Positions 22,201 to 48,560 of a stretch of DNA of 64,000 nucleotides are shown piece by piece. Source of the stretch: Podarcis erhardii (Eukaryota); NCBI GenBank assembly GCA_964252035.1, contig OZ176200.1; one strand, 5' to 3'. How positions within the stretch are numbered: the stretch's first letter is position 1; every line of letters begins with the position of its first letter. The notes beneath the pieces were generated by a model. The model saw nothing but the letters and a program-made list of their open reading frames with translations. It was not told the origin of the DNA and did not search any database. Both the position numbers and the translations under genes were made by a program.

Positions 22201-25160
22201 CATAGTAGAGGGAGACGAGCTGCGTTCTCACAAGTCTGCCACAGGCATATATCCCTTTACTGCTTTTTTTAAAAAGATCTATTTATTTGAAATTGTTGAA
22301 TAAGCTGTAATGTGTGTGTGTGTGATTTTTTTTTAATAAAAAACCTAGCTCTTATTATTTGATCTGATTTTGCAATTTAGTTTCAAATATAGCAGAGCAA
22401 AACCTGAGTTTATTATGTACGCATACAGACTCTTCTTATTAAAATCTGAAGTGGGGCCATTGCATTTCAAGTTCGGATTTGGGGAATAGAAGAGGTTCAG
22501 CAGAAATTATCAGCATTAGCTTCCTGCAGCTGTAAACCTCCTTGAACTCAAGAGATGATGACTCAAGCACACTCATAGTTCATTCATTTCCTTAAATTGT
22601 TTGTTCTCCAGCTTCATGGGGATGGAGAGTTCAACAGTTAATTTCAATAGAAGTGTCAACACTCAAGCACAGCTGGGTATCAACCCATAAGCAATGAGAA
22701 TGCCATAATAATCATATTGTACATTGTATATACTGTATGTATGTACCGTATTTATGCAAATCTAATGTGCCATCGAATCTAATGCACACCTCAATTTTCA
22801 AAACCTTGAAAACAAAAAAGTATTTGCTGGCACCATCAAATCTAATGCACACCCTAATTTTTGTGAGGTCATTTGGCCAAAATGGTGCACATTCCATTCA
22901 AGTAAATATGGTATGTATAGTGATAGATAAATCAATATTAATACCAACAGTTGTGTTGCAAAAATGAGGGTACTGAGAAATGAAAATATTTAGGGGAAAA
23001 TATCTAAGGGGGTCTTTGTCCATGGAGTTTTCTTTGCAGGGATACTGGAGTGGCTTGCCAGTTCCTGCTCCAGGTGGATCATATTTGGTCAAAACTCTCC
23101 ACTATGACCTATCTGTCTCGGGTGGCCCTGCACAGCATAGCTCATAGCTCCTCTGAGTTATTCAAGCCCCTTTGCGATGACAAGGCAGTGGTCCATGAAG
23201 GATCATGGGCTCCATGAACATTGCAGATGGTGACAGCAGTCACGAAATTAAAAGACGCCTGCTTCTTGGGAGAAAAGCAATGACAAACCTAGACAGCATC
23301 TTAAAAAGCAGAGACATTACCTTGCCAACAAAGGTCCATATAGTTAAAGCTATGGTTTTCCCAGTAGTGATGTATGGAAATGAGAGCTGGACCATAAAGA
23401 AGGCTGATCGCCGACGAATTGATGCTTTTGAATTATGGTGCTGGAGGAGACTCTTGAGAGTGCCATGGACTGCAAGAAGATCAAACCTATCCATTCTCAA
23501 AGAAATCAGCCCTGAGTGCTCACTGGAAGTTCAGATCGTGAAGCTGAGGCTCCAATACTTTGGCCACCTCATGAGAAGAGAAGACTCCCTGGAAAAGACC
23601 CTGATGTTGGGAAAGATTGAGGGCACAAGGAGAAGGGGACAACAGAGGATGAGATAGTTGGACAGTGTTCTCGAAGCTACCAGCATGAGTTTGACCAAAC
23701 TACAGGAGGCAGTGGAAGACAGGAGTGCCTGGCGTGCTTTGGTCCATGAGGTCACGAAGAGTTGGACATGACCAAATGACTAAACAACAACATCTAAGGG
23801 GGTAAAAATATTCAGAAATAGCCCAGTGATGACTGAGAATGCCCAGAGGCCATGGAATTCTGAATGTCCATATGTGGGGGGCAGGGTTTGCAGGAGAAAA
23901 TATTGCAAAAACTAAGAGGAAACAAAGTGAATGTATTATCCTGAAAGTATGATTGATGGCTGGAACACTAAGCAGAAGCACTCCACATTTGTTACAGGTC
24001 CCAGTTGTCACTGCTGATATTTGAGAACCGATTGTGGCTTCTACACAGTAGTGAGGAAACAGCATTTTGCATGTGCTCAGTGGCATTATTACCATTTAGT
24101 CTTCACAAGTCCCTAGGGTGACACCTAAAGGGGTCTAGTCAAATGCTGTTTAGCACTATCTCCAACCAAGCATGGTTATTTTTGTAATGGCCCATGTCAG
24201 TTTGCTCTACAGATTTGCAGTGTAGTGTGCCACTCCCCTTCCCTGCATCATAGTCCTCCTACCCAAAGGGAATTCTCAAAACCCTTGCTTCTGAAATGAG
24301 TTTTTACTAGTAAAAACTATGTGCTGCTTTTAATTCTTGTAGGTCTACAGAGCTCTCACTTGTGGGAATTTGTAAGAGACCTCCTCCTGTCTCCTGAGGA
24401 GAACAGTGGTATTCTGGAATGGGAAGACAGAGACCAAGGCATCTTTCGAGTTGTTAAATCAGATGCTCTAGCAAAGATGTGGGGGCAAAGAAAGAAAAAC
24501 GATAGAATGACCTATGAAAAACTAAGCAGAGCACTCAGGTAAGCTATTTATTTAATCGGTATTATATAAGACAGCTGATTTCACAGTTTAACTCGTTCCA
24601 AATATTTATTTTTGTTATGCTGTATAATGCAAAGGTCATGAGACACAGCTATGGCTCTTTTGATTAAAGATAGGATCATGTTGCCAAATCTGTGAGTAGA
24701 ATAAATGAGGATAATGAGACATTAGTCAACAGATCATTTGCCAACCTACCTAATGAATATGCCGCTTAATACTATAACCTTACCATTTCCCTTGGCAACA
24801 ATCCTAGAATTTGACTCTGAACTGTTTTCTTAGGAAAACAAATGTAATGCACAGTGTTTCAAAAGGAGGGAGTTGAAAAGAGTCTGGGAAAGTGTTGAAC
24901 TCTGAGCAGTTTAACTGTGCTGTATGTGTGCAAGTTCCCCTTTGCCAGAAGACTAGAGTGGTCTCTCAAAAAGAATGTCTTATTGACTAGCATAGTAAAA
25001 CATTTAACATGGTACTGTATGTTAAAGCTGTTTCTAAGTCCAACTTCAATTTTGTTGTTGCAGATACTATTATAAAACTGGTATTTTGGAACGAGTGGAC
25101 AGGAGGTTAGTGTACAAGTTTGGAAAGAACGCACATGGATGGCAAGAGAGCAAGCTATGA
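13099..25160 (+). CDS. ELF5: ETS-related transcription factor ELF5, complete CDS in 6 exons (774 nt, 257 aa; 256 aa from the second ATG at 13102)
   Basis: Spliced product [14 protein letters not shown]...HPEY-like [21 protein letters not shown] (PNT) ... [20 protein letters not shown]...[38 protein letters not shown]. All introns are GT-AG and phases join in frame. Confidence 0.97.
15658..15909. mobile_element. Tc1/mariner (Tigger-like) MITE in an ELF5 intron
   Basis: TIRs cagtggtacctt / aaggtactagtg flanked by TA. Confidence 0.75.
17878..18111 (+). CDS. ELF5: ELF5 coding exon 2 (PNT/SAM domain, 234 nt)
   Basis: ggcag|GT TCT GAT...CAT G|gtcagt; [35 protein letters not shown]. Confidence 0.97.
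18580..18630 (+). CDS. ELF5: ELF5 coding exon 3 (51 nt)
   Basis: ctatag|GT GTC TCC TTC TTT CAC GAC...GAT T|gtaagt; [16 protein letters not shown]. Confidence 0.92.
19209..19581 (-). mobile_element. Sauria (Squam1) SINE, older variant with an internal insertion
   Basis: (ACCTTT)-type tail, core gtcatgtggccagcatgactaa and tRNA-like head; about 40 extra nt compared with the other copies. Confidence 0.85.
20049..20101. repeat. (CTCTTC)n pyrimidine microsatellite
   Basis: Direct inspection; the source of the RKRKRK, FLFLFL and GRGRG ORFs. Confidence 0.9.
21127..21195 (+). CDS. ELF5: ELF5 coding exon 4 (69 nt)
   Basis: ttccag|AT ATT GAT AAG GCA TGT...ACA A|gtaggt; (Y)[22 protein letters not shown], matching human CLKTSGIKSQD..SHSRT. 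Confidence 0.93.
21862..22045. repeat. Imperfect long inverted repeat (probable decayed MITE)
   Basis: Arms gggtggaactgtggagc...ctggatggggcag and ctgccccatcctgg...gctccacagctccaccc. Confidence 0.6.
22745..22870. mobile_element. Probable Tc1/pogo-type non-autonomous fragment
   Basis: Starts taccgtattt and has repeated aatctaatgcacacc subterminal motifs. Confidence 0.4.
23014..23791 (+). mobile_element. BovB (RTE) LINE insertion with an inverted 5' segment
   Basis: 23205-23657 encodes the BovB RT C-terminus ([28 protein letters not shown]...[16 protein letters not shown]) and runs to a (CAA)n tail; 23014-23204 is BovB 5' sequence in reverse; 12-bp TSD ATCTAAGGGGGT (23002-23013 and 23792-23803). 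Confidence 0.9.
24343..24538 (+). CDS. ELF5: ELF5 coding exon 5 (ETS domain, 196 nt)
   Basis: ttgtag|GT CTA CAG AGC...CTC AG|gtaagc; [28 protein letters not shown]...[10 protein letters not shown]. Confidence 0.98.
25064..25160 (+). CDS. ELF5: ELF5 last coding exon (97 nt to TGA)
   Basis: ttgcag|A TAC TAT TAT AAA ACT GGT...AAG CTA TGA; [31 protein letters not shown]. Confidence 0.97.
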
Positions 25161-26118
25161 AATACCCTTTTGCTTCAGACTCACTGTCAAATATGCAACA
25201 TGAAGTCACCAAGGGAAGCTCTTTGCAGGACCTCTCTAGATTCATAACTGGATAAAATAGCAACAATAGACTTTGAGGATTGTATTGGGGAATTCACTGT
25301 TCTCCATATTTTTTGGACTAGCATCATCAAATGCTTGACACATCAAAATAATACCCAAAAACTGTTCTGTAGACTTATACCATAGTCTGGGGCTATATAG
25401 GTAGCATTGTTCCCAATGCCAAGAAGAGCAGCAGTTTGCCAGTCAGGGCTCCCCAGAGCATCTTCTAAACTGTGCAGGAATTTGTAACTCAAACTTTATG
25501 TGGTGAGATCAATGAGGCAGCAAGAAAGTAGAAAGCCTGCGGCAAATGCAGTTACACCAGAAAATGTGAAGAAGGGACACCATATTTCCAACCTATCCAA
25601 GTCAATAAGAAAGTACGATGAACTTAGCTATATATCAGATTCCCTAACTGAATCCACAGTTCTGTCACTTTAAAAAAGCCAAACCCATAGATTTCAAAAG
25701 AACACATGCTTGAAAACTAATTTCAAAATGAGCCCATATATTTATCAATTTTTATCAACTCCCCCCCCCCCCCCGTTTCTGGTGCTTCCATCACTGTATG
25801 CACTTTAGTGCAAATAGTTATCACTTATTCATACTCTGTTAGTGGGCTGGTTGGTTATAGTAAGTCAAATACTATCTGACTGCATATTGTCCTACATTCG
25901 TTTTTATGGAGTGGAGTATATTGAGCATGGGGATGGCAGAATATAAATATTTTAAATAAATTAAATAAAAAAATAAAATGAGAGTCTATTTTACACACGG
26001 AGAGACAGACAGACACACTGGAATTTGTGAAAGCAAAATACTGTGGTTCTGGTCAAAGAATATGAAAAATAAGTTTGTGGGAACACTGCTGTAATCTAGT
26101 AGAATAGTGCTGAATCAT

Positions 26119-26221
26119 GTTGTTGTTTAGCCATTTAGTCGTGTCCGACTCTTCATGACCCCATAGACCAGAGCATGCCAGGCACTCCTGTCTTCCACTG
26201 CCTCCCACAGTTTGGTCAAAC
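26119..26221 (-). mobile_element. Short BovB 3' end
   Basis: (CAA)n tail on the minus strand; 10-bp TSD GCTGAATCAT (26109-26118 and 26222-26231). Confidence 0.85.
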
Positions 26222-29200
26222 GCTGAATCATAATCACTATTAAACTCAGAGGACATACGTGCATCAGTTTATACATTTTTCTGCCACTCATATTCTTATG
26301 TAACTAGCATGTCTTTTCCACTCCTGCCTTCAGTGAGGCTCAGAAGCTTATGGCATTTCTATATCAGGCACTTAAAACTGTGATATCCCCCCTCTCCACT
26401 TCCTAAAGAGCCTAGAAGGTTTTTGGGTTTTTTAGGGCAATGAAGTTTCATTATTTGTATTCCTAAATCCCTCCACAACATTTCATCATCAGTCAGTTTG
26501 TACAATTAAACAGATTTGAAACATTTAAAAATATTGCACAGCCATGCACTTAAGACTATGCAGGTACAAGAATTCAGGCTATATAAATCCTTCTGAACAT
26601 ATATAACAGATTATGAATAGAGTGGTTATTTTTAAAGTAGTGTATTTGTACTATAACCTAATAGCAATTACGTATGCCTTTTAGGTTCAGGATTCTACCT
26701 CAGGTGGTGCTTGACCAGTTTAACTGTGGGTTTTTGTTCATCTTTAAAGCAGCAGGGCTTCTGCAAACTAACATAGGCCTCTCCTACCCTGTCAGTTTTA
26801 GAATTCGCTTTAATTCTTTTATCCTTTAATGATGGGCACATCCTAAGCACATTATGCGGAACTGAGTTACTCACAAGGAGCCAGCAGTGATAATAAATCC
26901 CTTTTGGCAAGTGGATATTTTATCAGGACTCAAACCCACCCAGGCCTGGGACATGAGAGCCATCCTGCTATGGCCAGAGAAAGGAACTGTGGGGATTTCA
27001 TCCAGACCAATGTGGAAGACTTGTAAGAACAATAGATCAAAGCTGGTTAAAGTGTACTCCCTGATCCTTAACAGATTTTAAGTCAAGTTTGTTCACTGAT
27101 CTGAGCAATTTAGGGATTTTTATGCAGGTGCTGGTTTCCAATTGAATGTTGACCTTGTATCTTTTCTTTTGGCTCACTTCATCCCTGCCTTACCACCTGA
27201 TTGTAGCTAGGACAAAATGCTTCGATGAAGCATTTAGTTTGGTGATGTCTGCCCTCTGTGTTAATTCTCCCAACCTGTTGTCCTTTTCATGTCATAGGAT
27301 GAGAAATCTGGCGTGCCTCATTTATGTACTGTAATTTTGCCCAGTGTACCAAACCTTCCACCCCATCACCTTTTTAGTTATCTAAACTAAACACTGCGCA
27401 TATTTTCAATGAAGTCACAGTGGTACACACCTGACAACTGCACTTTATATGGGGGAAAATGCCCAGTTTATTGCACAACACACAGCACCAAGACTGAGCC
27501 ACAACATATATTATGTGCATATATTAAGTGAGAAACAGAAATTCTGTTTCTCAAGAATTTTTACACTTCTCCCTGGAAGTCTTGCTTTTAAAGTTACTGA
27601 ACTAGATTCAATTTTGATTTCAAGAGTGGAATTTTTGTGGTGCTGGGTAAGGGGACACAGAGAATACGTCACATTTATGATTTTCCTTTTTAAAAGAAAG
27701 ATCAACAGAGAAGGCTTATCAATAATATAGTTTACCACATCTCTGAGATGCCAGTTCACAGGCCTCGCACTGCTTTTTCTATGAGCATGTGCCCTTCTAG
27801 TCACTGCCAAATTACAAGTGAATTCTGCATTATATAATAATGGGCTAAATCCTGTGCCAAAAAAGCTGCATCTTAATTCATGTGAGTTTTCCCCACACCT
27901 TGTTAGTGGGTGCTTGTGACTCTGCTTTGTAAAGCTTTGTTTTATTTATTAATATGACGGTTCCCAGCAAAGGACAATTGTGAGGCTGCACTGCCATTCA
28001 CAGGATCTGGTTTTGACATGTTATTGCAAACATTTAAAAGACAACATGTGTTGTGGCTGAGATCTAAATGAAGTGTACAGTGATTTCTGCACACCATCAG
28101 AGAAAAGGCCCGGCGCTGTATATATAGGACTTTCAGCTATGTTTGCCATAGTTATTTGCAGGTCAAAACCCTATTCACCTAGCAGGGCATCTGTCTTATA
28201 AAATAATAATAACAACCAGCACATAATTAAACCTTCCTTTATCCCTACATTACAAGTGAGGCTTTCAAAAATAGTTTGTCCCACAGCATACTGGGGTTGT
28301 GTGAGGAGCTGCAATTCAAAGAAAATTGCATCTAAAGAAGCTCCTGCATTCTGGTCCCCAAATATTTCGTTACTTGTGGGCAGTGCTGGGGTGCTGGTGT
28401 GCTATGTTCAGGCCTGCTGGTGTTTTAAAAAGCATTCAACCATCTTGGAGTTGGCTAAAATTGCACTAGAATTTTTTTCAGGTAGCACAGAATACTTTCT
28501 TGGTGAGCAACACCTTGCCACATGAGGCAAAGGCAGTTTAAGGGGGCAAAACCCAGTGTGGAATTCTACATTCCTTTCAAAGCAGCAGTAGAAGTCGCAT
28601 TCCATATAAATTTATGATGTAGAATGAAGCATGGGTGTGAAGTGTGTGTGTAAGAATATTAAATCCTGTACAATAATTTTGGATTTGTGTATTTTCCAAA
28701 CCACTGTAGTTTGTAAAGTGTGCATAAAAAAATTAATTGTAACCTGTGTCATTTATGTTGGATGTTATTTTACAATTCATTGTATTTATTTATTGAATTT
28801 ATATACCATCCTATACCTGGAGGCCTCACAGCGGTTCACAGAACAGCATTCATGTCAACTTTTTTCCTCAGCCCGCCCCAGATTTGGAAAGCCTGTGTCA
28901 TTCCCAGTGATGTCACCTCCGATTACCTCAGCATTAACTCCATGCACCCTCCAACCTTAAAATACCGCTCCATTATCCTTCCTTTTCCCTAAATGTACCT
29001 CTGGGTGGAGCAGCAGTGGCCAAGTGGGTATTGCCTTTCTCCTTTGGACTTTCTATTCTCCCTCTAGTGCCTGAATGCTGCAACAACAGCATCACCAGAG
29101 TGTGCTGCTGACATTAGGAAACATAGTTCTCATCTAGACCAGTGCTCCCCCCCCCCCGAGGGTACTCAATGGTATGCAGTACCGGCATCCCAAGTGTGAC

Positions 29201-29564
29201 ACTTACTGTAACAACTTCATGGTGTGTATTGGCACCTTTAAAAAGCACTGAGCATGGCTGTGTCCGTTGCAGGGACCCCACTACGCAGATTTGGGGAAAT
29301 GAAGGGGTTCTTCCGTGCTTCAAATTACAATGCAATCCAGAAAAGAACTTTCAGGACCGTAACCCCTGCCTCAATTCAAGTGAAGCATCATGAGCTGTCA
29401 GGGGCATTTGTATTATGAGCCTCTAAGTTAAAGACTTTGTTAATTTCAGCTAGCGTTTTATAAGAGGCTCATAAGTGCAATTCTGACCGAAGAAGGATAG
29501 TTGTCATGTAGAAGTACACCTCAGTGTCATGTGCAGAGTTATTGTCTGAAATTATCCCGGTGTA

Positions 29565-29800
29565 CAGTCATACCTTGGGATCCTGAATGCCCTGGAACCT
29601 GGACATTTTGGCTCCTGAACACCGCAAACCCGGAAGTGATTGTTCCTGTTTGCAAACGTTCTTTTGGAACCCGAACGTCCAATGGGGCTTCCGTGGCTTC
29701 TGATTGGCTGCAGGAACTGCAGGAACTTTCTGGTTTTTGAACATCTTGAAGTTAAATGGACTTCCAGAACAGATTCTGTTCAACTTCCAAGGTACAACTG
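29565..29800. mobile_element. Tc1/mariner MITE
   Basis: TIRs cagtcataccttgg / ccaaggtacaactg with TA duplications. Confidence 0.75.
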
Positions 29801-30424
29801 TAAATACTGTGGGATATGACATCTCAGGGGGTATAGTAAAATGCGCTTCTCTCTGATATAGTAACACTTCTCCAACTGCAAATTTGGGCCAGCTCAGAGG
29901 TTAACTGAGTTTGTTTGTACTGTTTTGAATATATGAAAAAACAATAAAAAATATTATGAGGTGGGGAGTTGATTGTGAACCTTCTACATGTCATGGGTCT
30001 TCTTGGCCTCACACATGCACACACACACTCCCACCACCACATGCAATAGAATTTATATGCTCAACCTAAGTTCTGCCCACATGGTCTGTCTTCCTCATTT
30101 TGTTACAGAATGATCAAACATACAATTGCTTCATACGCACACTAAATTCTACTTAAATGCATGCCAGGTCATACATGATGCCTTCCGTCCAATGGCGAAG
30201 GTGAACATGTAAGCCAAGACACAGTTCTTTGCCATGTGTGCTGGGCTACAACATGGACCAATCCTAAAATAGCATAACCAAATCTTTAAATTATGCTACT
30301 TTTAATATTATACTAAGCCAGCTCTATATTTGATGTGGTGACACATAAGTGGGCCTGAGCAACAGATGCTTCCAAAGCAGTCAACCTCACTCTGTTGTGC
30401 CACTGGTTCGAATTTCTTATTCTT

Positions 30425-30887
30425 CAACATCAACTTTGTTGGACTGGTCATGTTGTGCAGATGCCTGATGATCGACTTCAAAAGCAACTACTCTATTCCA
30501 AACTTAAAAATGGAAAGTGTAATGCTGGTGGTCAACAAAAGAGGTTTAAAGACTGTCTCAAGGCAAATCTTTAAAAATGTAGTATAAACACTGACAACTG
30601 GGAAACACTGGCCTGCGAGTGCTCCAGTTGGCGAACAGCCTTTACCAAAGGTGTCATGGGCTTTAAAGACACTTGAACTCAGGACGAAAGGGAGAAACGT
30701 GCTAGGAGGAAAGCACGTTTGGCAAATCCACACCGTGATCAACTCCCACCTGGAAACCAATGTCCCCACTGTGGAAGGACGTGTGGGTCCAGAATTGGCC
30801 TCCACAGTCACTTACAGACTCACTGTTAAGAATGTGTTCATGGAAGACAATCTTACTCGGCTATGAGTGATCGCCAAAGAAGAAGAA
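30425..30887 (+). mobile_element. RTE-clade LINE 3' end (non-BovB), with stop codons
   Basis: Translates to WTGHVVQMPDDRLQKQLLYSKLKNGK...QQKRFKDCLKANL and a C2H2 finger CPHCGRTCGSRIGLHSHLQTH; (GAA)n tail. Confidence 0.85.
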
Positions 30888-31153
30888 CAACAACAGAGTT
30901 TTGTTGTTTTGATGTCATTGGCAGTGGGGAGCCAATTTTGTAAAGTCTTATAGTGCTTGGGTATCACCAGTAAATCACAGCCTGGAATGTCTATACCGCT
31001 TGCCACATGAAACATGATGAAACACAGCATGCTGCCATTCTTGTGAATATTTCACCAGTGCTGCTGGGCTGGCAACTTTTTGGGCTTCTGCTTTGTAGGC
31101 GGGGGAAGCGCACATTATATGATGAATGCACAGCTACACATAAAGTGTACACC

Positions 31154-31975
31154 TGTCAGAGCTGCCTCTAGGTCCCAGCTCACAGAGGACCAACGCCAGG
31201 CTGATGTTATGTACAAAAGTCTTTATTGAAGTTTAATTTCCATTTCAAAGCCAGAGCATGCAGCCCTACGTCTAGACTCTAGATCGGCGAAGTCCCGTCT
31301 GAGTCTCCGCCCCTTCCACACCAGTTTAAGATCCTAGCCCTGCTCCACCTCCTGCGCTGCTCTCTTCTCCTCTGGGTCCTCCTGCCCTCTGGGGCATTGC
31401 CCTTTCTGGACTCTTCCGACGCTGAGTCGCTTAGCTCCTCCCCCTGCCTCCGGCGTGCTTTAGGACCCGGTTCCCAATCCTCACTCTCTGCTGTCCCGTG
31501 CTCCTGTACATTTGAACTTGCTTCTCGCGCCAACCCAGTGACCTTTCTCCTAACCGTTACACTACTTCTATCACTCCTTCCCTCTTCCGTGACACTGGCC
31601 GGATCTGACCTCCCTTCCGTTGTCCGACTCTCCGAGGGAGGCGTGGTAGACTCTGCCTCGTCTCCTCTCCCTGGTGGGGAAAGCACTGGCCCCGATGCCT
31701 GGGACTCTTCCCCCCCACTCTGCTCTGGTGGGGAAGCTGGTCCTGATTTCCAACTACTGCTCTGGGAGTCCCTGCTGCCCCCTTGCTCCTGGGGCGTTCC
31801 CCTTGGGACCCCCCTGCCCCTGGCCACTGGCGCTCCCTTCTGTGAATCTTCCGATTCGCTGGAGAGGCTCATGGAATCCCTCGGACCACTGTCCCCTCCT
31901 ACGCTCCCTTCGGATTCCTCCCCCTCGCTCTCCATCTCCCATCTTCCCTGTGCCTCAGCTCCTGAGCCCCTGACA
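31154..31975 (-). mobile_element. Solo LTR, copy 2 (822 bp)
   Basis: TGTCAG...CTGACA with its own 5-bp TSD ACACC (31149-31153 and 31976-31980); about 7 substitutions versus 1777-2598. Confidence 0.9.
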
Positions 31976-33814
31976 ACACCCATTAGGATGCCACAACCAG
32001 TTATGTTTAGGACATGTGACAATGTAAAGACCTTTTCCTATATGGAAGTGAAAGCCAATTAGGACAATTATCATGTCTAGAACAACCTTCAGAATAACGG
32101 TGCTAAGTAAGAAAATTGACACAAAATGTACAGCCATCCTTCTGTCATAGAATTGCTCAGGATTAGCAAAGTCCTGTGAAGACAGGCAGGGCAATTGGTT
32201 GAAAATCCAGAGCTTTCTCCAGTGTTTTCAATTATTGAAGAATCACATCAAACAGTATGGAGAAAGGAGAGATTTCACTGCCGGGAGCCTGGACAATACC
32301 CAATGAATTTGATTATTATACATCAGCAAGGAATGGCTTGGTGACTTTAGACATGCATTCATTTTGCACGGTAAATTTACTGACAGAGAGTATATTGTAA
32401 GCAGTCTGAGAAAAGTTGCGGCTCCTTTCACAGAGTGAATCAGCATCTTGCTAGATATGTTAAAAGGTTTCATACAGTAGTTAAATTCTTCGTACTGCTA
32501 TAACAAGTGTGTCAAAGTCCCATGATAGTCATGCAAAAGTTCAAATGACTGGCAGGGACCCAAAAACCTACTTCAGATGTACACAGCAGCTTACATGCCC
32601 ACAATGGATTTTTTTTTGCACTTTTTAATTCAAATAGCAGGGTACATCAAACTCCCCAAAGTTTGAACAACATGTGGAACCGGAAGGGTTTACTTTGAGA
32701 AACATAAATTCCTCAACTCCAATGAGGAACTATTGGCATAGTTCTTTACATCAAGGATGATTGCTGCACACAAACAGTTTAAAATATTTTTTAAAAAAAT
32801 TCAAACTCTGGATGGATTTTATCAAATTCATCATACCTGCCTTTAAGTGAAACTTGGTAATTAAAAATAGGAACCCAGGAAGCAATATAGAATTGGTTTC
32901 CTGCACTTCCCAAGTAATTCAAAAGAGCAAATATTCACATTTTCTCCTTAAAAGAAGCTGATATTTCCTTGGATTTTGATCTTTCTCTTTCATCAACACA
33001 GTGGCATGATTCAGACATAATACCAAACTGGTTCAGTATTATCTGAAAATAGAATCATAACATGCAGGCTTCCTCCCCCAGGTTCCTCTTCTTCCTGTGT
33101 GTCACGATTTCTTAACTTACTTTTGTATTCTCAACAAACCCTAGAGCTCATCCAAACTTTCTTTTGTGTGAGTTTCTCAGGCATAGGTCCATGCTTTCCA
33201 GGTCCAGATCTGAGCGGTTGTTGATTGGAAGAAATGGCAATCAGGTTTCCCACAGGTTTATTTTTGTTCCAGTTCAGCAGTAAACAGCAGGTTCTCCCAG
33301 GGAAAGTGATGGGGGGGGGGAACCAAACCCTTGGATATGGACCTGCAAAGTGTAGACCTGTGCCTGCAAAGCTCAGCACGGATGGAAGTCTGAATAAGCC
33401 CACACCTTGGCATTTTGATCAAACCTGAGCTTTCTTCAAGCATTACAACATGAAGGGACACCCTGGGAGGTTAAGGTTCTTAATGGCATGAGCCACCTCT
33501 GCATGTAAAAAGAGACTCCCAGCTGTCAATGTTACAAGTGAAGATGGTGAAACTGGTATGAAGTGTAAAACAATGAGGACAGGACTAAAGGAACATCTCT
33601 ATCCTTAAACACCAGAACCTCTTATTACAAAGATATGCTTACCTATGAATTTGTTCTTTTTGTGCTGCCTTGGCTTGTTCCTAATGTTCAAAATTAAGTG
33701 TGCTGAAATATTTAACTGTATATGTGCCTTTTGACATGTTCCGCTTTCACAGCTGAATATGCGAATTTGTCATCCATCTTTGTTTGTCTTCACTGGGGTG
33801 CTTACATGCTGTCA

Positions 33815-37536: not shown

Positions 37537-37544
37537 AAAAACTC

Positions 37545-38290: not shown

Positions 38291-38447
38291 AATTTCAAAC
38301 CTTCTGAGCCCCTTTTAGCTGAATATCTGGTTTTAGAGTTACTTGAAGAAGAGAACTGGGCTGTGCTTTCTGCTTTCAAAGCAGGCACTGGCATCAACCT
38401 CGTCAGCGAACTACATGAGACAAACACTTCACATTTTGCTGGCAAAA

Positions 38448-38531
38448 ACCATCCCAGATAGAAGGAGTGTACCGTTCTTCGGTCAAGGGTATACGATAGC
38501 TGTGCTCTCCTGCTAGAACCTCCAAAGAAAG
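38448..38531 (+). pseudogene. Internal fragment of 7SK snRNA (RN7SK pseudogene fragment)
   Basis: accatcccagatagaaggagtgtaccgttcttcggtcaagggtatacgatagctgtgctctcctgctagaacctccaaagaaag aligns to the middle of vertebrate 7SK (ACCATCCCCGATAGAGGAGGACCGGTCTTCGGTCAAGGGTATACGAGTAGCTGCGCTCCCCTGCTAGAACCTCCAAACAAG). Confidence 0.88.
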
Positions 38532-38793
38532 TAAAAGTGCACCTTTTTCAATGGCACTGAACAATCAAGTTGAAAATCAAACAAAATTACAGAAATCTTG
38601 GAAGCTGCATTCATTAATAAACTGTTTATATGACCAAGTCCAATTGATTAATGCCATCTTTGTCACAGGAAATACACAGGACTGTATCACAAGCAGATGA
38701 AACAAAAGGCAAGTTGCTCACTACCCTACTTTTTAGCAGCTAAACTTTGCTCTCCAACAAGCATCAGTTCAGCAGTTCAGCTGCAGTCTAAAC

Positions 38794-38930
38794 CAGTGTT
38801 TCCCAACCTTGGGTCTCCAGCTGGTTTTGGACTACAACTCCCATCATCCCTAGCTAGCAATACCATTGGTCAGGGATGATGGGAATTGTAGTCCAAAAAC
38901 AGCTGGGGACCCAAGGTTGGGAACACACTG
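38794..38930. mobile_element. Palindromic hAT MITE
   Basis: TIRs cagtgtttcccaacctt / aaggttgggaacacactg; 8-bp TSD GTCTAAAC on both sides. Confidence 0.88.
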
Positions 38931-39698
38931 GTCTAAACAGCTGTAGTGGCAAGCAAGATGCACTATATGCCAAATGGCCCGGAGTTTGTTGATACAAATT
39001 GCTTACAGCTATTTTCCATACTAGCTGCATGTGGTGCATATTCTACTCATCTTCTCTCGGGTTATTTTGGAGACTCACTTGTGTATGTCTGTGGCTAGGC
39101 TGCAAAAATATTTGAATTGTTGACGATTCTGCTCCTTCTTCCTGGAGCTACCTCCTAGTTTGCAGTAATGAACAATAAATATGAAAGATGCTGAAGAATC
39201 TTTTGTACAGAGGGATGAAGAAAGAGTAAGTGAATATGCTTTGACTACTCTCTTGAAGGTGCGGCTGTTTCTCATCACAGCCAAACCCTTTGCACTGCTT
39301 GCAGATCTGACCTACATTCTGCAGAGAAGCTTCACGTGAGGCGTTATAAAATCATTGTAATCATACATAATAGCTATATAACCACAACTGTTTTGCTGGA
39401 TTAGATATATTGATAAAGAGCAAGCATGTGCATGCTTTTAAAAAAATTTAAATGGAAAAATAGAATGACTCTGTTTCCATTTTCTTAATGTCCCTAAAAT
39501 GAGGGTTTCTCAGTCCTGAGAGGTCACAGCAGAACTGAAAGTGATGAAAGGGTGGATATTTCAAGACAGGCTTCTAAATGCAAAACAGTATGATGTTGCT
39601 CAATGGCCTTTTAGTAAACAGGGAGAATATTGACTCCAATCAGAAGTGGGGAGAACAGCCCATATTCCCTTTTTATACAGCTGCTAAATAGTACAAGA

Positions 39699-40054
39699 GG
39701 GATGCAGGTGGCGCTGTGGGTTAAACCACAGAGCCGAGGACTTGCCAATCAGAAGGTCGGCGGTTCGAATCCCCGCGACGGGGTGAGCTCCGGTTGCTCA
39801 GTCCCTGCTCCTGCCAATCTAGCAGTTCGAAAGCACGTCAAAGTGCAAGTAGATAAATAGGTACCACTCTGGCAGGAAGGTAAACGGCGTTTCCGTGCGC
39901 TGCTCTGGTTCGCCAGAAGCGGCTTAGTCATGCTGGCCACATGACCCGGAAGCTGTACGCCAGCTCCCTCGGCCAATAAAGCGAGATGAGCACCACAACC
40001 CCAGAGTCGGTCACGACTGGACCTAACCATCTGGGGTCCCTTTACCTTTACCTT
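39699..40054 (+). mobile_element. Sauria (Squam1) SINE, full length
   Basis: A box ggtggcgctgtgggttaaa, B box ggttcgaatccc, ACCTTT tail; 14-bp TSD taaa(t/c)agtacaaga with one mismatch. Confidence 0.92.
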
Positions 40055-40319
40055 TAAACAGTACAAGAAGTCTGTCCTCTGCATCTGGACATCCTAGTGT
40101 ACCTTTTCCCAACAGTATGGCTAGCTCCCCTACACAGAGTTAGCCTCCTCTTAGGGATACACTTTCACCATTTATTACATGAGAACTGGATACTGCATTC
40201 CAAGTAATATTTAAAATGGAATGAAAATGATTTTATGTGGGAAATATTTCAGGATAATCCACTAAACAGCTCAGTATTTAAAATACCTGTGGCACTCTAG
40301 TTATCAATGCTGGGCTTGC

Positions 40320-40770
40320 CACAGTCACCTGGTTGGCCAGGATGCTGGATTACATGAACCATCAGCCTGATCCAGCAGGCTCTCCTATGTTCTTCTGCTA
40401 CCACACTAGCTGATTAGAGAACTTACCGTGATAACAATCAATAACTCATCTAGGTGTGGATATTTCTTTTGTAACAGTCTCTAACACAGTCATATAAGTA
40501 CCTGGAACTGGGACACATGAGAAACTTGTGTCTTCTCCATTAGTGAAGAGCTGATTTGTTTATGAACAATACCAGTCCTTGAGAAACTCAGCTTTTTACA
40601 TCCTTCCATTCTGATAACTGCTCTTTGCTTCCTGTAACTTAACCAGTTCCTGATCCACAGAAGGACCTCTCCACTTATTCCATTACCACTAAGCTTGCTT
40701 AGTAGTCGTTGGCGAGCTACATTGTTGAAAGCTTTTTGAAAATTCAAGTATACTATGTTTTTCATGTCTT
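40320..40770. mobile_element. CR1 fragments (3' tail on +, RT fragment on -)
   Basis: Minus ORF VYLNFQKAFNNVARQRLLSKLSGNGISGEVLLWIRNWL; plus-strand gatgctggatta...gcctgatccagcaggctc tail. Confidence 0.65.
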
Positions 40771-42174
40771 TTAAGCATTGGGCATTGTGTACCTCATCTA
40801 AACACCAGCATTGGTGTAACTCATGTCACATCCACACCACACATTTAAAGCACATGCCTTTAAAGAATTTGGGGAAATGTAGTTAAGGGTCCTGGGAATT
40901 GTAGCTCTGTGAGGAGTAGACAAACAGCTTGAACAAGAACTAATTCATTCAAAATTCAAAACAGGTTATTATCTACTTCCACAGATATTGACATTTTCTA
41001 TTGCACAAATTAGCTACAATGAGTCTTCTGCCAACTAAAGGCCCACTGAACCCTCTAAAATGCCCCTCCTGGGGGTTATGGAACCATCCCAAGTTGTAGG
41101 GCCAGTGCAGGTTGCAGCAGGGCTACAGAATCGGCAGACTCGAGGTGAAGCATGCCTTTTCACTTGTGAAAGGCATCTTAAGGTCCAAACTATAAACTGT
41201 TATGGGTGGTAGGGGCAGAACCCCCCCCCCCTAATCTCTATATTAAGAGATGGGGTGGAATTTGAGCGAACTCATAAATTTGTAAATTTAGCAAGGGCTG
41301 GAACTAATACTGGCTAGCTTCCTCATGAGGCCAGTCTGGCAAGGATAGGTCATTGAAGAAAGAAAAGACTGGTTTGTTTGATAACAGTAAGACATCAGCA
41401 AAACATAAGACCCTCTGCCCAGTAGCTTTTGGGGTAGGATTGCCGTTGGTCTGGTGTCAGCAGCTGGACAAAATACCTTTCGCAATGGACTTGGGAAATG
41501 GAGGCTGCCAGGGTGGCTGCGAGGGGGGTGCTCAAAGTGGAAGGAGAAGGGTTGTTTTCTGCAAGTAGAGCTGGGAAGGAGAAGGAGGAGGTGAGCAAAA
41601 CTCCATGGAGGGGCTGAAGGGCAATAGCCATGCTGGGTAGCTGGAGCAGGCCATTACAGAGAGACACAGGGACAGTGCTTAGAAGCCCTCTGAATGCTAG
41701 GAAGATAAGCCCCTTTTGCTTGTCCTCTGTGCTGTGAACGCCATAAAACTCAGGTGTAAATATATGTGAATAAACCATATTTCTTAAAGACACTACAGTT
41801 GCCACCATGTTTCACTGCAAAAGAACACAACCCCTGGTTAAGTGCCAAAGCCCCTGGATTCTTGCTACTGCTCAGCAGAGATTGGGGTGGCTTGCAACAA
41901 TACAATAGCAAAATGATTTGGATAGACCTAAGCAGTAAGCTTCCAATGGGTGTATATTATTCATAATATTACTTATGCCAGTGTATTACATATACAAGCC
42001 ACAGAAGCATAAATTTGTTTTAATATAGATTTCAAACATTACATGTGCCTTTACTGCATCCACATAGCATTGATATTGGAAAGTATTTTCCAACTGTAAG
42101 AACAACCGAGCCATGGAATAAGTTGCATCATAAATGTTATTCACCTTCCCCCTGTCCTGTTAAGTTCTGTCTAA

Positions 42175-42907
42175 AATAGTTCTCTCCCTGACCTAGCCAC
42201 TGTGATCCATGCGATGGTCACCTCCAGACTGGATTATTGTAACTCGCTCTACGTGGGGCTGCCCTTGAGACTGACCCAGAAACTCCAGCGGGTGCAGAAT
42301 GCCGCGGCGAGACTCCTTATGGGGTCTTCGCTGCGAGATCACATTCATCCGGTACTATACCAGCTGCACTGGCTCCCGGTGGAGTACAGGATCAGGTTTA
42401 AGGTGCTGGTTTTAACCTTTAAAGCCCAATACGGCCTAGGACCCTCGTACCTACGGGACCGCCTCTCCTGGTATGCCCCACAGAGAAACCTACGGTCTGC
42501 AAATAATAACATCCTCAAAGTCCCAGGCCTCAGAGAGGTTAGGCAGGCCTCAGCTAGAGCCAGGGCCTTCTCGGCTGCGGCTCCAATCTGGTGGAACGCT
42601 CTGTCACAAGAGACTAGGGCCCTGCGGGACCTGACATCCTTCCGCAGGGCCTGCAAGACAGAGCTGTTCCACCAGGCCTTTGGTCAGGGCGCAGCCTGAC
42701 TCCCTCCTCTGGCAACCTGCACAGAATCTTGCTTAATCGGTTGCCATTAATTTGATTTTAATTAATTTTTATAATGAAATATTTTTAGAGTGTGATTATT
42801 TGATTGTTTGATTATTTGATTATTGTTAGCCACCCTGAGCCCGGCTTCGGCTGGGGAGGGCGGGATATAAATAAAATTAATTATTATTATTATTATTATT
42901 ATTATTA
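42175..42907 (+). mobile_element. L2-clade LINE 3' end, relatively young
   Basis: Uninterrupted 165-aa ORF (TSRLDYCNSLYVGLP...LHWLPVEYRIRFK...KTELFHQAF), 3' UTR and (ATT)n tail. Confidence 0.9.
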
Positions 42908-43609
42908 TGCCTAGAACATCTTGCAAGTGTGCATTTTGATTTTGAACTAGACAGCCCTAAAGGTAAATTATCCAATCAAATGTCACATGGACAGGATCCA
43001 AATAAATGTGTCATTAGTTTTGTATAGTCAAGGTAGTGTCTTTCCCTCCCAACAGCAGCCCAAGGCAAAACACTTCAAAACTACTTAATACTGTAGTGTG
43101 GAAGCCAACCAAATATAATAAAGATCAGGGGCTGGATAAGACCACTGGGGTTCCCATGTAAGCTGATTAAAATACAATAATCAACCAGATACAGGGAGTA
43201 TCAAAAGATAATATGGCTTTAGGAAGAGCAATTATGTGGGTGGGGTAGGGTGGGGTGGGGTAGGAGAAAAATAATCTCACAGTGCAGTGTGTCTCTAAAG
43301 TAGCTACTAATATTCTCCTAAAGAAGCAAAACTGGCAGAACCTATTTATTATAATGAATTGAGAAAAAAAAAACTGTTTTTTAATCAATGTCAGAATGAC
43401 AATATACATATATTTATGAAAGTATTACAGATGAGAGGGAGTTGTATTATTGTCGGCTAAGTGCAAAGGGGTCCAATGCCAAAGGAAAATAATTTTTAGG
43501 GATGCCTCAGAGGTTAATTTTGTTGATGAACCAGTCACCTTAATGATTATCAGTTTTCATTTTAATTGTGCTTTATGATTTAATTTTGTACATTGTCCTG
43601 ATACTTTAT

Positions 43610-43700
43610 TATCACAGAATTGGAAGGGATCCTGAGGGTCATCTAGTCCAACACCCTGCAATGTAGGAATCTCAACCAAATCACCTATGACAGATAATCC
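43610..43700 (-). mobile_element. CR1 3' terminus
   Basis: cacagaattggaagggatcctgagggtcatctagtccaac, as at 3222. Confidence 0.65.
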
Positions 43701-44142
43701 TCAACAGAGGCAACCTTGTGCAGCTACCTTTCAGCAGAAAGCCAGGCTTTCTAACCCATAGACAGAATCATGGGGTGGGGTGGGTGGTTGAGAGCTGGGA
43801 AAACAAATATTTTTTTTTCAAAAGGAAAGGAAATAATAGCAGAACTCTGTTTTAGCCCCCATGATATTTCCTAGTTGCTAATAACTGTTAGTTCCTTCCC
43901 ACGGGTCATTTTGCCCCTCCGGATTAAGGATGATAAATTGGCAAATCACGGGTCAGGTCTTGTCTGCAAAGTAGCTTTCTCTCTTCCCAAACGTATACTC
44001 AACAAGGTATGATAACGTTGACTTTCACTAAAGTTGCAACCCTAATCCCACTTAACTACTATGTCATAAAATAGTACATTGTTTAGTGTGGGTTTGGTAA
44101 TGAAGTCAAATGAGTAATAATAAAAGCTTACTGTCAAAGTTA

Positions 44143-44460
44143 GGGACGCGGATGGCGCTGTGGGTTAAACCACAGAGCCTAGGACTTGCAACGGGGGGAG
44201 CTCCCATTGCTCAGTCCCTGCTCTTGCCAACCTAGCAGTTTGAAAGCACGTCAAAGTGCAAGTAGATCAATAGGTACCACTCCAGCAGGAAGGTAAACGG
44301 CGTTCCCGTGCGCTGCTCTGGTTCGCCAGAAGCGGCTTAGTCATGCTGGCCACATAACCGGGAAGCTATATGCCAGCTCCCTCAGCCAATAAAGCGAGAT
44401 GAGCGCCGCAACCCCAGAGTCGGCCACAACTGGACCTAATGGTCAGGGGTCCCTTTACCT
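44143..44460 (+). mobile_element. Sauria SINE lacking the B-box segment
   Basis: Perfect 15-bp TSD TTACTGTCAAAGTTA (44128-44142 and 44461-44475); about 30 nt including ggttcgaatcc are missing. Confidence 0.9.
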
Positions 44461-45376
44461 TTACTGTCAAAGTTACTGTCAATGTTAAGATGAAGCAGAT
44501 GCAGATTTGTGCTAGCTGCCCCTTCTGAGATGCAGCAGCTACTACCACCCAATGAGAAGACCTAGAGGGGGTGTTTGCGCCTACTTGTGTGGGTCAAACC
44601 ACTTGCTCTGTGCCACAGTGCTGCATGCATACTCTCCCTCTGCCACCCAAGCTTAGAGGGGATATGGCACAGAGAAGGGCATATGTGCACATGAGTGAGG
44701 AGGCAGCAGCTGCTCTTACAAGGAAAAGAAAACTGCTGCTTAAGGTAGCAACCAATAAGCAGCAGCAACTGCAATTGTCTTTCTCACTTGCCACCTTGGG
44801 TTGATGCAATGGAGACAACCGGACCTGATGAACCCTCCACTCAAAAAAAATTATGTCCAGAGAAAATGGGCAACTGTATGCAGAGGTGGCACCTACTTTG
44901 ACAAGCATTTGTTCTTATATGCGGAAGGGCTATAGCTTGGTGGCTGAACATTTGATAGCATGCAAAAGGTCTCAGCTTCAATTCTCAGCAGTTCCTTGCA
45001 AGACTGGAAATATCACCTGCCAACACCTTGCAGAGTTGCTGTCAATCAATGTAAACAATACACAGGCAGATGGATCAATGGTCTCACCTCTGTATAAGTC
45101 AGCTTCCTGTGTTCCTATGCTCACATGAACATTATCATGTTTTGCCTTTCGTAGAGAAAGATAATAAACAATGGGAACCAACATACAAACTTGGAAAGTC
45201 ACCACTGAGGTATCCATACTTTTGCATGCCACCCCAATCTCTGAGTGGTGTGAGATTCCAGGGGTGCCAGCTGTTTACCCAAGTTTCGGTGCCCTTGGAA
45301 TGAGGAACAGCAGAGACTGTGGTGTCTTTATTATATGTGGTTTGTTTAAACATATATACAACCTGAGCCTATGATG

Positions 45377-45728
45377 GAGGACGTGGGTGGCGCTGTGGGT
45401 TAAACCACAGAGGCTAGGACTTGCCAATCAGAAGGTCGATGGTTCGAATCCCTGCAACGGGGTGAGCTCCCGTTGCTTGGTCCCTGCTCCTGCTAACCTA
45501 GCAGTTCGAAAGCACGTCAAAGTGCAAATAGATAAATAGGTACCGCTCCAGTGGGAAGGTAAACGGCATTTCCGTGCGCTGCTCTGGTTCGCCAGAAGTG
45601 GCTTAGTCATGCTGGCCACATGACCTGGAAGCTGTACGCCAGCTCCCTCGGCCAATAAAGCGAGATGAGCACCACAACCCCAGAGTCGGCCACGACTGGA
45701 CCTAATGGTCAGGGGTCCCTTTACCTTT
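45377..45728 (+). mobile_element. Sauria (Squam1) SINE, full length
   Basis: Colinear with 39699-40054. Confidence 0.92.
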
Positions 45729-45974
45729 TTAAGGTTTTGTTTCTCCAACAGCAACAGTCTTGGATTCAAACCAAAATCAAGCTTGGCTCTTCCCTTATGC
45801 TTCTGCCTGCCACCTGCTTCTAGTGGAACTATCACACACAACTCTAGTTTTTGCCCTTCTAACGAACAGCTAGTTGAGGGAGTATAGGCAGTAGGGACCA
45901 CTCATTTGTTGTCTAGAACAGAGCTACTTTCTTTGTTACCTTAATGAATCATACTCAGGTCATTTCCAAGAAGC

Positions 45975-47560
45975 TGACCTGGTTATTCCAACAATTGAAT
46001 TCATCATTATTATTTTTTACGGTTTTCAGTTATATACATTTCAGTAGTTTTACAGTTATTTTAACATTTCAAGACTTGACTTCCTTCCCCCTCTTTCTAC
46101 AGTTCATTAAATTTATTTTTATCATCTCCTGCATATTCTAAATTGACTTAACTGCATTAACTTAACTGCATATTCTAACTTAACTCAACTTAACTTATTA
46201 TTCATCTACTTTAATTATATACTCTTATGAAACTGCAGGTTATTGCAATGATCCTGCCAATGTCCTTATCTGTTTACAATTTGTTTGTAAATATTCAATA
46301 AACCATTTCCATTCTTTTATAAAAAAGTTTGTTATCTTGATTTCTTATTTTTCCAGTAAGTTTTGCCATTTCTGCATAGTCCATAAGTTTTTGTATCCAT
46401 TCTTCTTTCATTGGGACTTCTTTCCATTTTTGGGCAAAAAACATTCTTGTTGCTGTAGTCGCATACATGAATAAATTTATATACTGTTTAGGTAGTTCTA
46501 TCCCTATAATTCCCAAAAGGAAAGCTTCTGGGTTATTGTTTTTTAAGAAATGTTATTTTAAACATCTTTTTCAATTCAATATATATCATTTCCCAGTAAG
46601 CTTTAAACTTACTATAAGGCCACCACATATGATAGAAAGTGCTATCTTTCTCTTTGCATTTCCAACACTTATTCAATTCTGATTTATACATTTTTGCCAA
46701 TTTACTCGGTGTTAGATACCATCTATATAACATTTTTATGTAATTTTCTCTTAAACCATAGCACGCTGTAAATTTTATATCTGTATTCCACAATTGTTCC
46801 CACGCTTCCATATCTATATTATAACCAATATATCATTGAAGATTTTAGTTGCTCATCCTTTGTCTCCCATTCCAGTAATATCTTATACATTTTCGACAGC
46901 ACTTTAACATTACATTCCAACAGATCTCTCTAATTGTGATATTTGTTCCCCAAACCCTCGTATCCTATCTTTCTTAAATACTTCATTCAAATGATCACAT
47001 TGTATCCATGTTTCCTGATAAATCCTTAAATTCTTTTAATTGTTTTAATAAATTTCTATAAGCTGTCCAACCTTTTATCATATTCCTTTTCTTTAGTGCT
47101 ATGGCTTCCAATGGTGAGAGCCAAAGTGGTGTTTTTGCCCCAAATAAAGTTCTCTATTTATCCCATACTCTATACATTTTTTCCCTAATTATGTGACTTG
47201 TAAATCCTTTCTGTACTTTCACCTTTTCATACCACAAATAGATGTGCCAACCCAAAATATTATCATGACCTTCTAAATCTAAGATATGTGGATTCTCCAG
47301 TGTCATCCATTCTTTCAACCAACAAAGACAAGATGCTTCATAATATCATATCATATCTGGCAAGAAGAATCCTCCTCTCTATTTTGCATCTATCAATATT
47401 TTATATTTTATTCTCGGTTTTTCTCCCTTGCCAGATATATTTAGAAATATCTTTTTGCCAAACATTGAAACAATGTATTGAAAAACAATTGTCTGTCATC
47501 TGAAGAGGAAAAAAAGGCATTGGGTAGCTTCCCTTCTTTTGTATTACTTTTCCTTATAGT
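45975..47560 (-). mobile_element. L1-clade LINE, 3' about 1.6 kb of ORF2 (degenerate)
   Basis: Minus ORFs: KMLYRWYLTPSKLAKMYK..NKCWKCKEKDSTFYHMWW (L1 C-terminal CCHC knuckle) and TATRMFFAQKWK...EEWIQKLMDYAEMAKLT. Confidence 0.85.
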
Positions 47561-48239
47561 CCTGTCCAATTCCTGGTTTCTCTTCAGTTAGTATAACTCT
47601 TTCGCCTTTTACCAACAATTGAATTCCTGCAGGATTCAGCAATTAGAAGGGACTCAGACATACAGCCTAACACACACCACAAACTTGCAACACTGCTATA
47701 CAGGTAAGTACCGTACATTTTCATCACAACATTTCATTTATTTATTCATAAAAAATATTTATACACCACATATAGATCTTTATCACAGAAGGTTACAACA
47801 ATATAAAAACATAAAACCAAAAATAAAAAATTAAACAAGTTTAAAAGGCAAAAGGAAATAAATAAAAAATATTGATAGACTGTGTGTGTGTGTGTACCAA
47901 TCAGGAAGTCTGTGTTACTTCTTTTCTGGTTATCTTTAATTTTTACGAGAATTAAAGCTAAGGCTGCAATTCCAGACACGTTTGTTCCCTATTCCGCCTC
48001 ACCGACCACACTGGAGGTTGGGAAGAGATTCCTCTCGGCAGCAGCTGAAGAGCTCTTGACTATGGTTAGATATTTAGCTCTCTGCACATAGCGATTGCCC
48101 ATTGATGAAAACATGTGTTGCAAGAGGGACCGATGTTATGCAAAGGGAGATAACGATCATTATACTTAATTGGTGTTCAGAGCAAAGAAAGAAAAGCTCC
48201 ACTTAGCTGAGCAAGTAAGTCCAAATAGAAAAGGTGTGA

Positions 48240-48560
48240 ATTTTACTACTTACCAATAGCCGTTGGGGAAGGAGCTCTGGCCAATCAGGAACGAGAAGGG
48301 GCGGGGCTTGGGGCTGCTTACCTTTCCTTGCTCTCGCATCCTGCGCCTCCTCAGCGCCGGGCAAGAGGACGAGGTGAGCGCGGAGTGCGCTGCGCGCCAA
48401 GCGGGAGTCGCTCCGCAGAAGTCATTCGCCTCTTTCCCAAGAAGCTCGTCGCTGCCAAAAGTCATCCTCGCGGCCATCTCGAGAAATGGCCGAGAGCCGG
48501 GACCCTGCTAGCGAGCAGCTGAAGCGCTGGCAAGAACTGCGGGGCTCGCAGGTACAGAAG
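48240..48560 (+). promoter_or_regulatory. CAT: CpG-rich TATA-less catalase promoter and 5' UTR
   Basis: CCAAT boxes at 48253-48257 and 48281-48285, perfect Sp1 box GGGGCGGGGC at 48298-48307, dense CpG (continuing to about 48900), strong Kozak context gagaaATGG. Confidence 0.8.
48486..48551 (+). CDS. CAT: Catalase exon 1
   Basis: [22 protein letters not shown]|gtacag (human [22 protein letters not shown]). Confidence 0.93.

Follow-up and report, generated by a model that had tools for sequence, protein, structure and literature searches.

A probable extra, inverted and 3′-truncated catalase gene between ELF5 and CAT in lacertid lizards

In human, the catalase gene CAT is found in the order ABTB2(−) CAT(+) ELF5(−), which is also the order in gecko. 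The sequence studied here is a stretch of 64,000 nt from the lizard Podarcis erhardii, containing no N-runs and referred to in the following as the window. The initial annotation described its ELF5 and catalase genes as both lying on the + strand, with the 5′ end of catalase about 23 kb past the ELF5 stop, and this holds, as something read directly from the letters and not as a statistical pattern: 23,325 bases separate the ELF5 stop codon from the catalase ATG. The locus therefore raises the question of whether CAT was turned round in this lineage, or whether the window carries another gene. As detailed below, the catalase in the window is very probably an extra copy common to lacertids, inverted and truncated at its 3′ end, and situated between ELF5 and the canonical CAT.

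Identity of the catalase gene in the window

The 5′ part of the catalase gene is present on the + strand, from the ATG at 48486 through exons 1–8 to 63739, after which the gene leaves the window (Table 1). Exons 2–8 lie within 58839–63739, each of them with a GT donor and none with a stop codon, and five of the catalase exons match the Pfam Catalase profile (PF00199, 1e-8 to 1e-24) collinearly with it. The kilobase around exon 1 (48001–49000) is the only CpG-island-like kilobase of the window. The motifs of the distal His and Asn are intact (RVVHAKGAG in exon 2 and VGNNTPIFF in exon 4), and we take the His of VVHAKG and the Asn of GNNTP to be the catalytic residues of catalase. The proximal haem ligand, the Tyr of RLFSYPD, is encoded by exon 9, past the window end, and the corresponding motif (GRLFSYP) is kept in P0237, the catalase-like protein of 508 amino acids (aa) which is the P. 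muralis orthologue. With unaltered His and Asn motifs in the window and an unaltered haem-ligand motif in the orthologue, the predicted product is most likely an active catalase.

The exons were queried one by one, with codon counts summed across exons and no spliced protein used for searching. The set of homologues was reached from exon 7, which led to a full-length fish catalase, from there to a Podarcis match and then to the vertebrate catalases. Lacertids were found to carry two kinds of catalase: one of 527 aa ending in -ERSNL, and a catalase-like one of 508 aa ending in -GSKKG. The gene for the latter is annotated in P. muralis, P. lilfordi, P. raffonei, Zootoca vivipara and Lacerta agilis. 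Over exons 1–8, the window gene is 97.7% identical to the 508-aa protein of P. muralis and 96.9% identical to that of L. agilis, against 88.9% for the canonical 527-aa protein of P. muralis. In a DNA comparison, 38.9–63.8 kb of the window aligns collinearly to the loci of two relatives: L001 of P. muralis, which carries the 508-aa gene (93.4% identity), and that of L. agilis (90.4%). Judging from these comparisons, the window catalase is the lacertid 508-aa catalase-like gene and not the canonical 527-aa catalase.

Gene order in lacertids and other sauropsids

Gene order was compared among three lacertids (P. muralis, L. agilis and Z. vivipara, for which the assemblies are independent and chromosome-level) and at the loci of other squamates (gecko, Elgaria, Thamnophis and Anolis), the lacertid genera Podarcis, Lacerta and Zootoca all belonging to the Lacertini. 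In P. muralis, 4.1 kb separate the 508-aa gene (+) from the 527-aa catalase, which comes next and is on the opposite strand, so that the two are tail-to-tail. In the orientation of the canonical gene, one reads ABTB2(−), CAT(+), 508-aa gene(−), with CAT head-to-head with ABTB2. L. agilis and Z. vivipara have the pair in this tail-to-tail arrangement too, with a gap between the two genes of 3.3–4.3 kb over the three genera.

A comparison of this kind had been called for by the initial annotation, and its outcome is clear in the gecko (Eublepharis), where the mammal-like arrangement is found without an extra copy: ABTB2(−) and CAT(+) are followed 9.4 kb further on by a gene on the − strand coding for a 258-aa protein with PNT and Ets domains, and no catalase exons lie between CAT and this gene, which corresponds to ELF5. 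ABTB2 is also head-to-head with CAT in the bird, Elgaria and Thamnophis loci, in none of which a second catalase was found within 10 kb. In turtle, bird, Elgaria and Thamnophis, the 10 kb downstream of CAT showed neither an ELF5 exon nor an ELF5 gene, so among these loci the ancestral tail-to-tail state is shown by the gecko only. The gecko locus, together with the lacertid gene pairs, also rules out that the orientation seen in the window is a general sauropsid trait of an only catalase gene.

The canonical CAT is characterised by being head-to-head with ABTB2 and tail-to-tail with ELF5. The window gene instead stands head-to-tail behind ELF5, and in P. muralis it is the 527-aa gene which ABTB2 adjoins. 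Since the canonical CAT is still beside ABTB2, the canonical gene has never been turned round. The tail-to-tail pairs of three lacertid genera, the position of the P. muralis CAT beside ABTB2 and the absence of the copy in gecko all favour the suggestion, already made in the initial annotation, of an extra inverted duplicate between ELF5 and the canonical CAT. When the window is combined with the loci of the relatives, the lacertid order in the orientation of the window would be ELF5(+), catalase-like(+), canonical CAT(−), ABTB2(+), and the canonical copy presumably lies just past the window end in P. erhardii too.

Extent of the copied segment and its new 3′ end

The two P. muralis copies are collinear (9924–35468 of L001 against 30608–52614 of L007, the locus of the canonical CAT), with 8.9 kb aligning at 79.5% identity. 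The coding sequence amounts to only 1.5 kb, and an aligned length so far beyond it means that the introns were copied, so that the gene is not a retrocopy. An inverted segmental duplication is defined by two oppositely oriented copies on the same chromosome which have kept their introns. The tail-to-tail pairs of the three lacertid genera, and the similarity of the P. muralis copies in their introns, agree with this definition.

At the 5′ side, the copy shares a CCAAT box (48281–48285) and the adjoining GC box with the promoter of the canonical CAT in a multiple alignment. Similarity to the canonical gene starts at 48409 according to BLAST and at about 48.28 kb, the CCAAT box, according to the alignment. 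A breakpoint zone had previously been proposed at 42–47.6 kb: this block does adjoin the true edge of the duplication, but it does not contain it, the proximal edge lying directly at the 3′ border of the transposon-rich and AT-rich block. A weak, non-collinear match to the canonical upstream region at 48051–48205 (67% identity, E = 1.6e-7) was set aside as uncertain. The annotated canonical CAT of P. muralis (10001–30701 of L007) begins 20.7 kb before its ATG exon, adjoining ABTB2, which implies either a far non-coding first exon or an annotation artefact; of this 5′ region, the duplicate took only the part proximal to the ATG exon.

At the 3′ side, homology between the two genes can be followed for about 70 bp of intron 12 and no further. 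In L007 the last base of the canonical exon 12 is 52542, and exon 13 (53134–53193) was not included in the copied segment. In the copy, exon 12 ends at a GT donor and is followed by a new terminal exon (CAG|GGATGA) which adds a Gly and a stop codon and which is conserved in Podarcis and Lacerta, acceptor included. The replacement of exon 13 by this exon accounts for the 508-aa length and for the lack of an -SNL tail. In the window itself the gene is cut off before its 3′ end, and the C-terminus is read from the orthologues P0237 and P0238 (the latter another 508-aa protein), both of which end in DRYNAKGSKKG; the peroxisomal targeting tail encoded by exon 13 (-SNL or -ANL) is thus missing from them, while canonical sauropsid catalases end in -ERSNL. 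Between the two arms, a unique spacer of about 7.4 kb (P. muralis, derived coordinates) holds the canonical exon 13 and 3′ end.

Age of the copy and selection

A codon tree was built from the annotated genes of the public loci only, the gene model of the window being left out. The P. muralis canonical gene and two catalase-like genes group together (support 100/99, and 100/100 with third positions alone), with Elgaria, Thamnophis and gecko outside this group. In the protein tree, five 508-aa proteins form one clade (100/100) with a long stem of 0.14, placed inside Squamata (99/96). Synonymous divergence (dS, substitutions per synonymous site) is 0.25–0.27 between the two paralogues, compared with 0.09–0.14 between lacertid orthologues of the copy and 0.51–0.71 from lacertids to Elgaria, gecko and Thamnophis, the anguid Elgaria giving 0.51. 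These values suggest an origin of the copy within the line leading to lacertids, at a time when anguimorph lizards, snakes and geckos had already branched off. The ratio of non-synonymous to synonymous divergence (dN/dS) is 0.12–0.14 among orthologous copies, which indicates that the copy is under purifying selection, and 0.25–0.29 between the paralogues. The protein of the copy would have changed fast at first and been under purifying selection since.

Proposed origin and alternative explanations

The events which could have led to this arrangement are as follows. From an ancestral order ABTB2(−) CAT(+) ELF5(−), the canonical CAT would have undergone an inverted segmental duplication, the copy landing in what was then the ELF5-CAT intergenic region. 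The copied segment would have comprised the core promoter (in which the CCAAT box precedes the ATG by about 200 bp) and exons 1–12 with their introns, up to about 70 bp into intron 12, leaving out exon 13 and with it the C-terminal -SNL tail for targeting to peroxisomes. In the spacer between the copies, a new terminal exon would then have added the Gly and the stop codon, giving 508 residues ending in -GSKKG. The simplest route would be one inverted duplication by fold-back or template switching, with about 7 kb left between the arms as a spacer. Inverted duplications with a unique spacer are known as products of such events from human structural variation and from yeast, and the lacertid locus resembles them in its two mirrored arms around a unique spacer, one arm having the ancestral flanks. 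Unlike pathogenic or somatic rearrangements, the lacertid duplication is old, fixed and under selection, and its junctions are too diverged for microhomology to be read.

Several points weigh against this account. In P. erhardii itself, the canonical CAT and ABTB2 would lie beyond base 64000 and are unseen, so that the argument leans on collinearity with three other lacertid assemblies; conversely, ELF5 is seen upstream of the copy in the window only, the P. muralis locus covering just 10 kb upstream. The place of the copy within squamates is a polytomy in the protein tree, as opposed to the codon and third-position trees, which resolve it, and its age is only bracketed, by a sampling in which lacertids are represented by Lacertini and the outgroups by Elgaria, Thamnophis and gecko. 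Furthermore, the similarity between the arms is uneven, being 90–94% around exons 7–8 and exon 12 and 67–84% elsewhere. The tracts of high identity include flanking intron (26374–26969 and 35055–35468 of L001 against 45122–46335 and 52198–52614 of L007), which makes some gene conversion between the arms likely. As conversion would lead to too young an apparent age of the duplication, the age estimate is a lower bound.

Seen alone, the window, with one catalase on the same strand as ELF5, would also suit a simple inversion of a single gene without any second copy, and a local inversion of CAT had indeed been considered in the initial annotation. This explanation is contradicted by the relatives: lacertids hold both genes, the 508-aa and 527-aa genes standing tail-to-tail in three assemblies, the 527-aa gene has kept its head-to-head position with ABTB2, and the window gene is of the 508-aa type (97.7% identity, as opposed to 88.9% with the 527-aa type). 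We consider such an inversion extremely improbable. The region is also rich in repeats, and inverted repeats are difficult to assemble, which could speak for an assembly error at the junction (a misoriented contig, or a collapsed or expanded repeat). It can, however, hardly be credited that P. muralis, L. agilis and Z. vivipara independently show the same structure by error; in addition, the window is collinear with the relatives across the promoter junction and free of N-runs, and the copies are about 20% apart in introns and about 11% in protein, so they are not assembly duplicates.

The remaining alternatives concern the age and the route of the duplication. The gene could be an old paralogue, either squamate-wide or related to the amphibian catalase-like genes, which only looks lacertid-specific because of gene conversion with its canonical neighbour. 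The well-supported amphibian clade of 503–512-aa catalases without -SNL, the several catalases of Anolis and the catalase-like exon fragments downstream of the sea turtle CAT would all fit, and gene conversion is hinted at by the patches in which the lacertid copies are 90–94% identical. Such an origin is nevertheless improbable, since no second copy is found within 10 kb of CAT in gecko, Elgaria and Thamnophis, nor between CAT and ELF5 in gecko; the Anolis copies are direct tandem repeats which keep exon-13-like tails and thus have another architecture; third positions and introns favour the lacertid canonical gene over the full length and not patchwise; and the copy nests within Sauropsida and Squamata with 99–100 support, apart from the amphibian clade. 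As for the route, a direct tandem duplication of CAT could have been followed by inversion of the distal copy, considering that direct tandem catalase arrays are present in another squamate (Anolis) and that the present data show the end state only. The mirror layout, in which an arm, a unique spacer of about 7.4 kb and an inverted arm follow each other, is however expected from a single event, which also needs fewer breakpoints, and no direct-tandem intermediate was found in the three lacertids examined; a two-step route is conceivable but unlikely. An inverted duplication of the canonical CAT in the lacertid lineage is retained as the most probable explanation of the locus.

Features of the window

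The features identified in the window are listed in Table 1. The ETS exon of the upstream gene has human ELF5 (1wwx) as its top match among solved structures (1.4e-35, 122.7 bits), and matches ELF3 and EHF with 88 and 87 bits, respectively (both about 1e-24). Being far closer to ELF5 than to ELF3 or EHF, it identifies the gene as ELF5 and not a neighbouring member of the family, and the window accordingly holds both the PNT domain and a C-terminal ETS domain closest to ELF5. Two near-identical repeat copies lie on either side of ELF5 on the − strand (1968–2603 and 31279–32022), with a long low-complexity open reading frame (ORF): SGAEAQGRWEMESEGEESEG.

Table 1 Features of the P. erhardii window (positions in nt from the start of the window; a dot indicates no strand)
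Feature	Position	Strand	Evidence
ORF with ELF5 PNT-domain exon	17847..18152	+	Pfam SAM_PNT 9.6e-27
ELF5 ETS-domain exon, first part of ETS domain (ORF 24321-24542)	24357..24539	+	Pfam Ets 3.8e-22
ELF5 last coding exon, stop 25158-25160	25065..25160	+	Translation ends GWQESKL (stop); 96.8% identical to last exon of gecko PNT+Ets gene
ELF5-side remnant of ancestral ELF5-CAT intergenic region	25200..26723	.	Three collinear conserved blocks in common with gecko CAT-ELF5 spacer
Repeat-rich spacer	26724..48249	.	Repeat family, RVT_1 match, GC profile
Core promoter and 5′ untranslated region of the duplicate, proximal edge of duplicated segment	48250..48485	+	Alignment to P. muralis canonical upstream region
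Catalase-like exon 1, 22 codons from ATG	48486..48551	+	tblastn with P0237 residues 1-22; GT donor
Catalase-like exon 2, catalytic His in VVHAKG	58839..59012	+	100% identical to P0237 residues 23-80; Pfam Catalase 1.2e-16
Catalase-like exon 3, boundaries approximate	59805..59918	+	Pfam Catalase, splice-site and tblastn evidence
Catalase-like exon 4, distal Asn in GNNTPIFF	60676..60806	+	Pfam Catalase 1.1e-23; bovine and human catalase chains 1e-24
Catalase-like exon 5	61977..62077	+	Open frame, GT donor, tblastn
Catalase-like exon 6	62862..62986	+	Pfam Catalase 1.5e-14
Catalase-like exon 7	63274..63465	+	Open frame, GT donor; query exon for homologue search
Catalase-like exon 8, gene runs on beyond 64000	63587..63739	+	Pfam Catalase 2.5e-18; window collinear with L001 to 63839

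Downstream of ELF5, the conserved blocks shared with gecko end at about 25205, 25995 and 26723. No gene was detectable in the repeat-rich spacer which follows, and which is collinear with P. muralis from 38.9 kb on, at 92–94% identity. It contains a fragment with similarity to reverse transcriptase on the − strand (Pfam RVT_1, 37959–38288), an AT-rich block at 46–48 kb (GC content 0.31) and four copies of a family of about 350 nt (D1/D2) resembling short interspersed nuclear elements (33979–34328, 39700–40052, 44113–44465 and 45379–45731). A further copy of this family is located in intron 1 of the catalase copy (53194–53540), and the family is plentiful in the P. muralis locus too.

Comparison with other catalase genes

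The window gene and the canonical vertebrate CAT of the ABTB2-CAT-ELF5-EHF locus are alike in their Pfam core, catalytic His and Asn, layout of exons 1–12 and CCAAT/GC-box promoter. They differ in the strand relative to ELF5, in the absence of exon 13 and of the -SNL or -ANL tail it carries, with -GSKKG as the end instead, and in a protein divergence of about 11% which extends to normally constant positions (DMVANF for DEMAHF). Since the targeting tail is missing, the product of the copy is predicted to be an active catalase which is most likely no longer imported into peroxisomes through a C-terminal signal and would be cytosolic.

The closest functional parallel is the catalase cluster of Caenorhabditis elegans, in which duplicated cytosolic catalases lie beside a peroxisomal one: as summarised in PMC7213980 (citing Petriv and Rachubinski 2004), ctl-1 and ctl-3 are cytosolic and ctl-2 is peroxisomal, and these neighbouring copies go back to a peroxisomal catalase that was duplicated locally. 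They stand in tandem in the nematode, whereas the lacertid copy is inverted and tail-to-tail with the canonical gene, and the cytosolic location in the lizard is a prediction. In the lacertid copy, unlike in the C. elegans cluster, the targeting signal was lost through a duplication breakpoint inside the gene.

Extra catalase paralogues whose C-termini lack -SNL are also found in other ectotherms, namely the catalase-like proteins of 503–512 aa in amphibians and the tandem catalases of Anolis. Both are separate events, the amphibian proteins forming a clade of their own with a support of 100, while the copy of the lacertids falls with their own canonical gene. The Anolis sagrei locus (L008, CM073870.1:268541060-268585469) has a direct tandem array of at least three catalase genes (523, 523 and 512 aa), all of them on one strand; proteins of the 523-aa type end in SKTGKN, without -SNL, and have a long branch. 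The anole array appears to be an independent expansion. In frogs, the separate clade (P0265, P0257, P0275, P0277, P0278 and P0281 being the amphibian catalase-like proteins) is present beside a normal 528-aa catalase, and the catalase-like proteins of caecilian and salamander also lack the -SNL tail; the clade looks like an older, independent paralogue. In the sea turtle locus (L002, OZ222813.1), fragments resembling catalase exons 2 and 3 (58255–59268, 61–68% identical) lie 8.4–9.4 kb downstream of CAT on the same strand and reach the end of the locus examined. They could belong to a diverged second copy or to a pseudogene.

The lacertid copy is already present in public annotation, as catalase-like or catalase. 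No paper on a lacertid catalase duplication or on its orientation was found in the literature searched.

Implications

These results settle the apparent break in synteny: lacertids still have an intact ABTB2-CAT-ELF5 block, and it is an additional, lineage-specific gene that has the unusual orientation. The presence of two catalase genes matters for lizard synteny, for orthology calls and for studies of catalase expression, given that the NCBI labels are inconsistent (catalase, catalase-like or both) and that reads or antibodies may fail to separate the two genes.

As an event, a lineage-specific inverted gene duplication is of an ordinary type; its notable consequence is the loss of the targeting exon under continued selection. 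The locus provides a clean natural case in which a duplication breakpoint deletes an organelle-targeting signal and the enzyme remains under purifying selection. It may be, though we put this forward tentatively and with somewhat more doubt than confidence, that lacertids gained a probably cytosolic catalase through a breakpoint which removed the targeting exon, that the copy was then kept under selection and that, together with the amphibian and anole paralogues, it reflects a repeated evolution of extra-peroxisomal catalases. The lacertid pair thereby offers a testable case of compartment change after duplication, in an antioxidant enzyme which is often measured in lizard ecophysiology.

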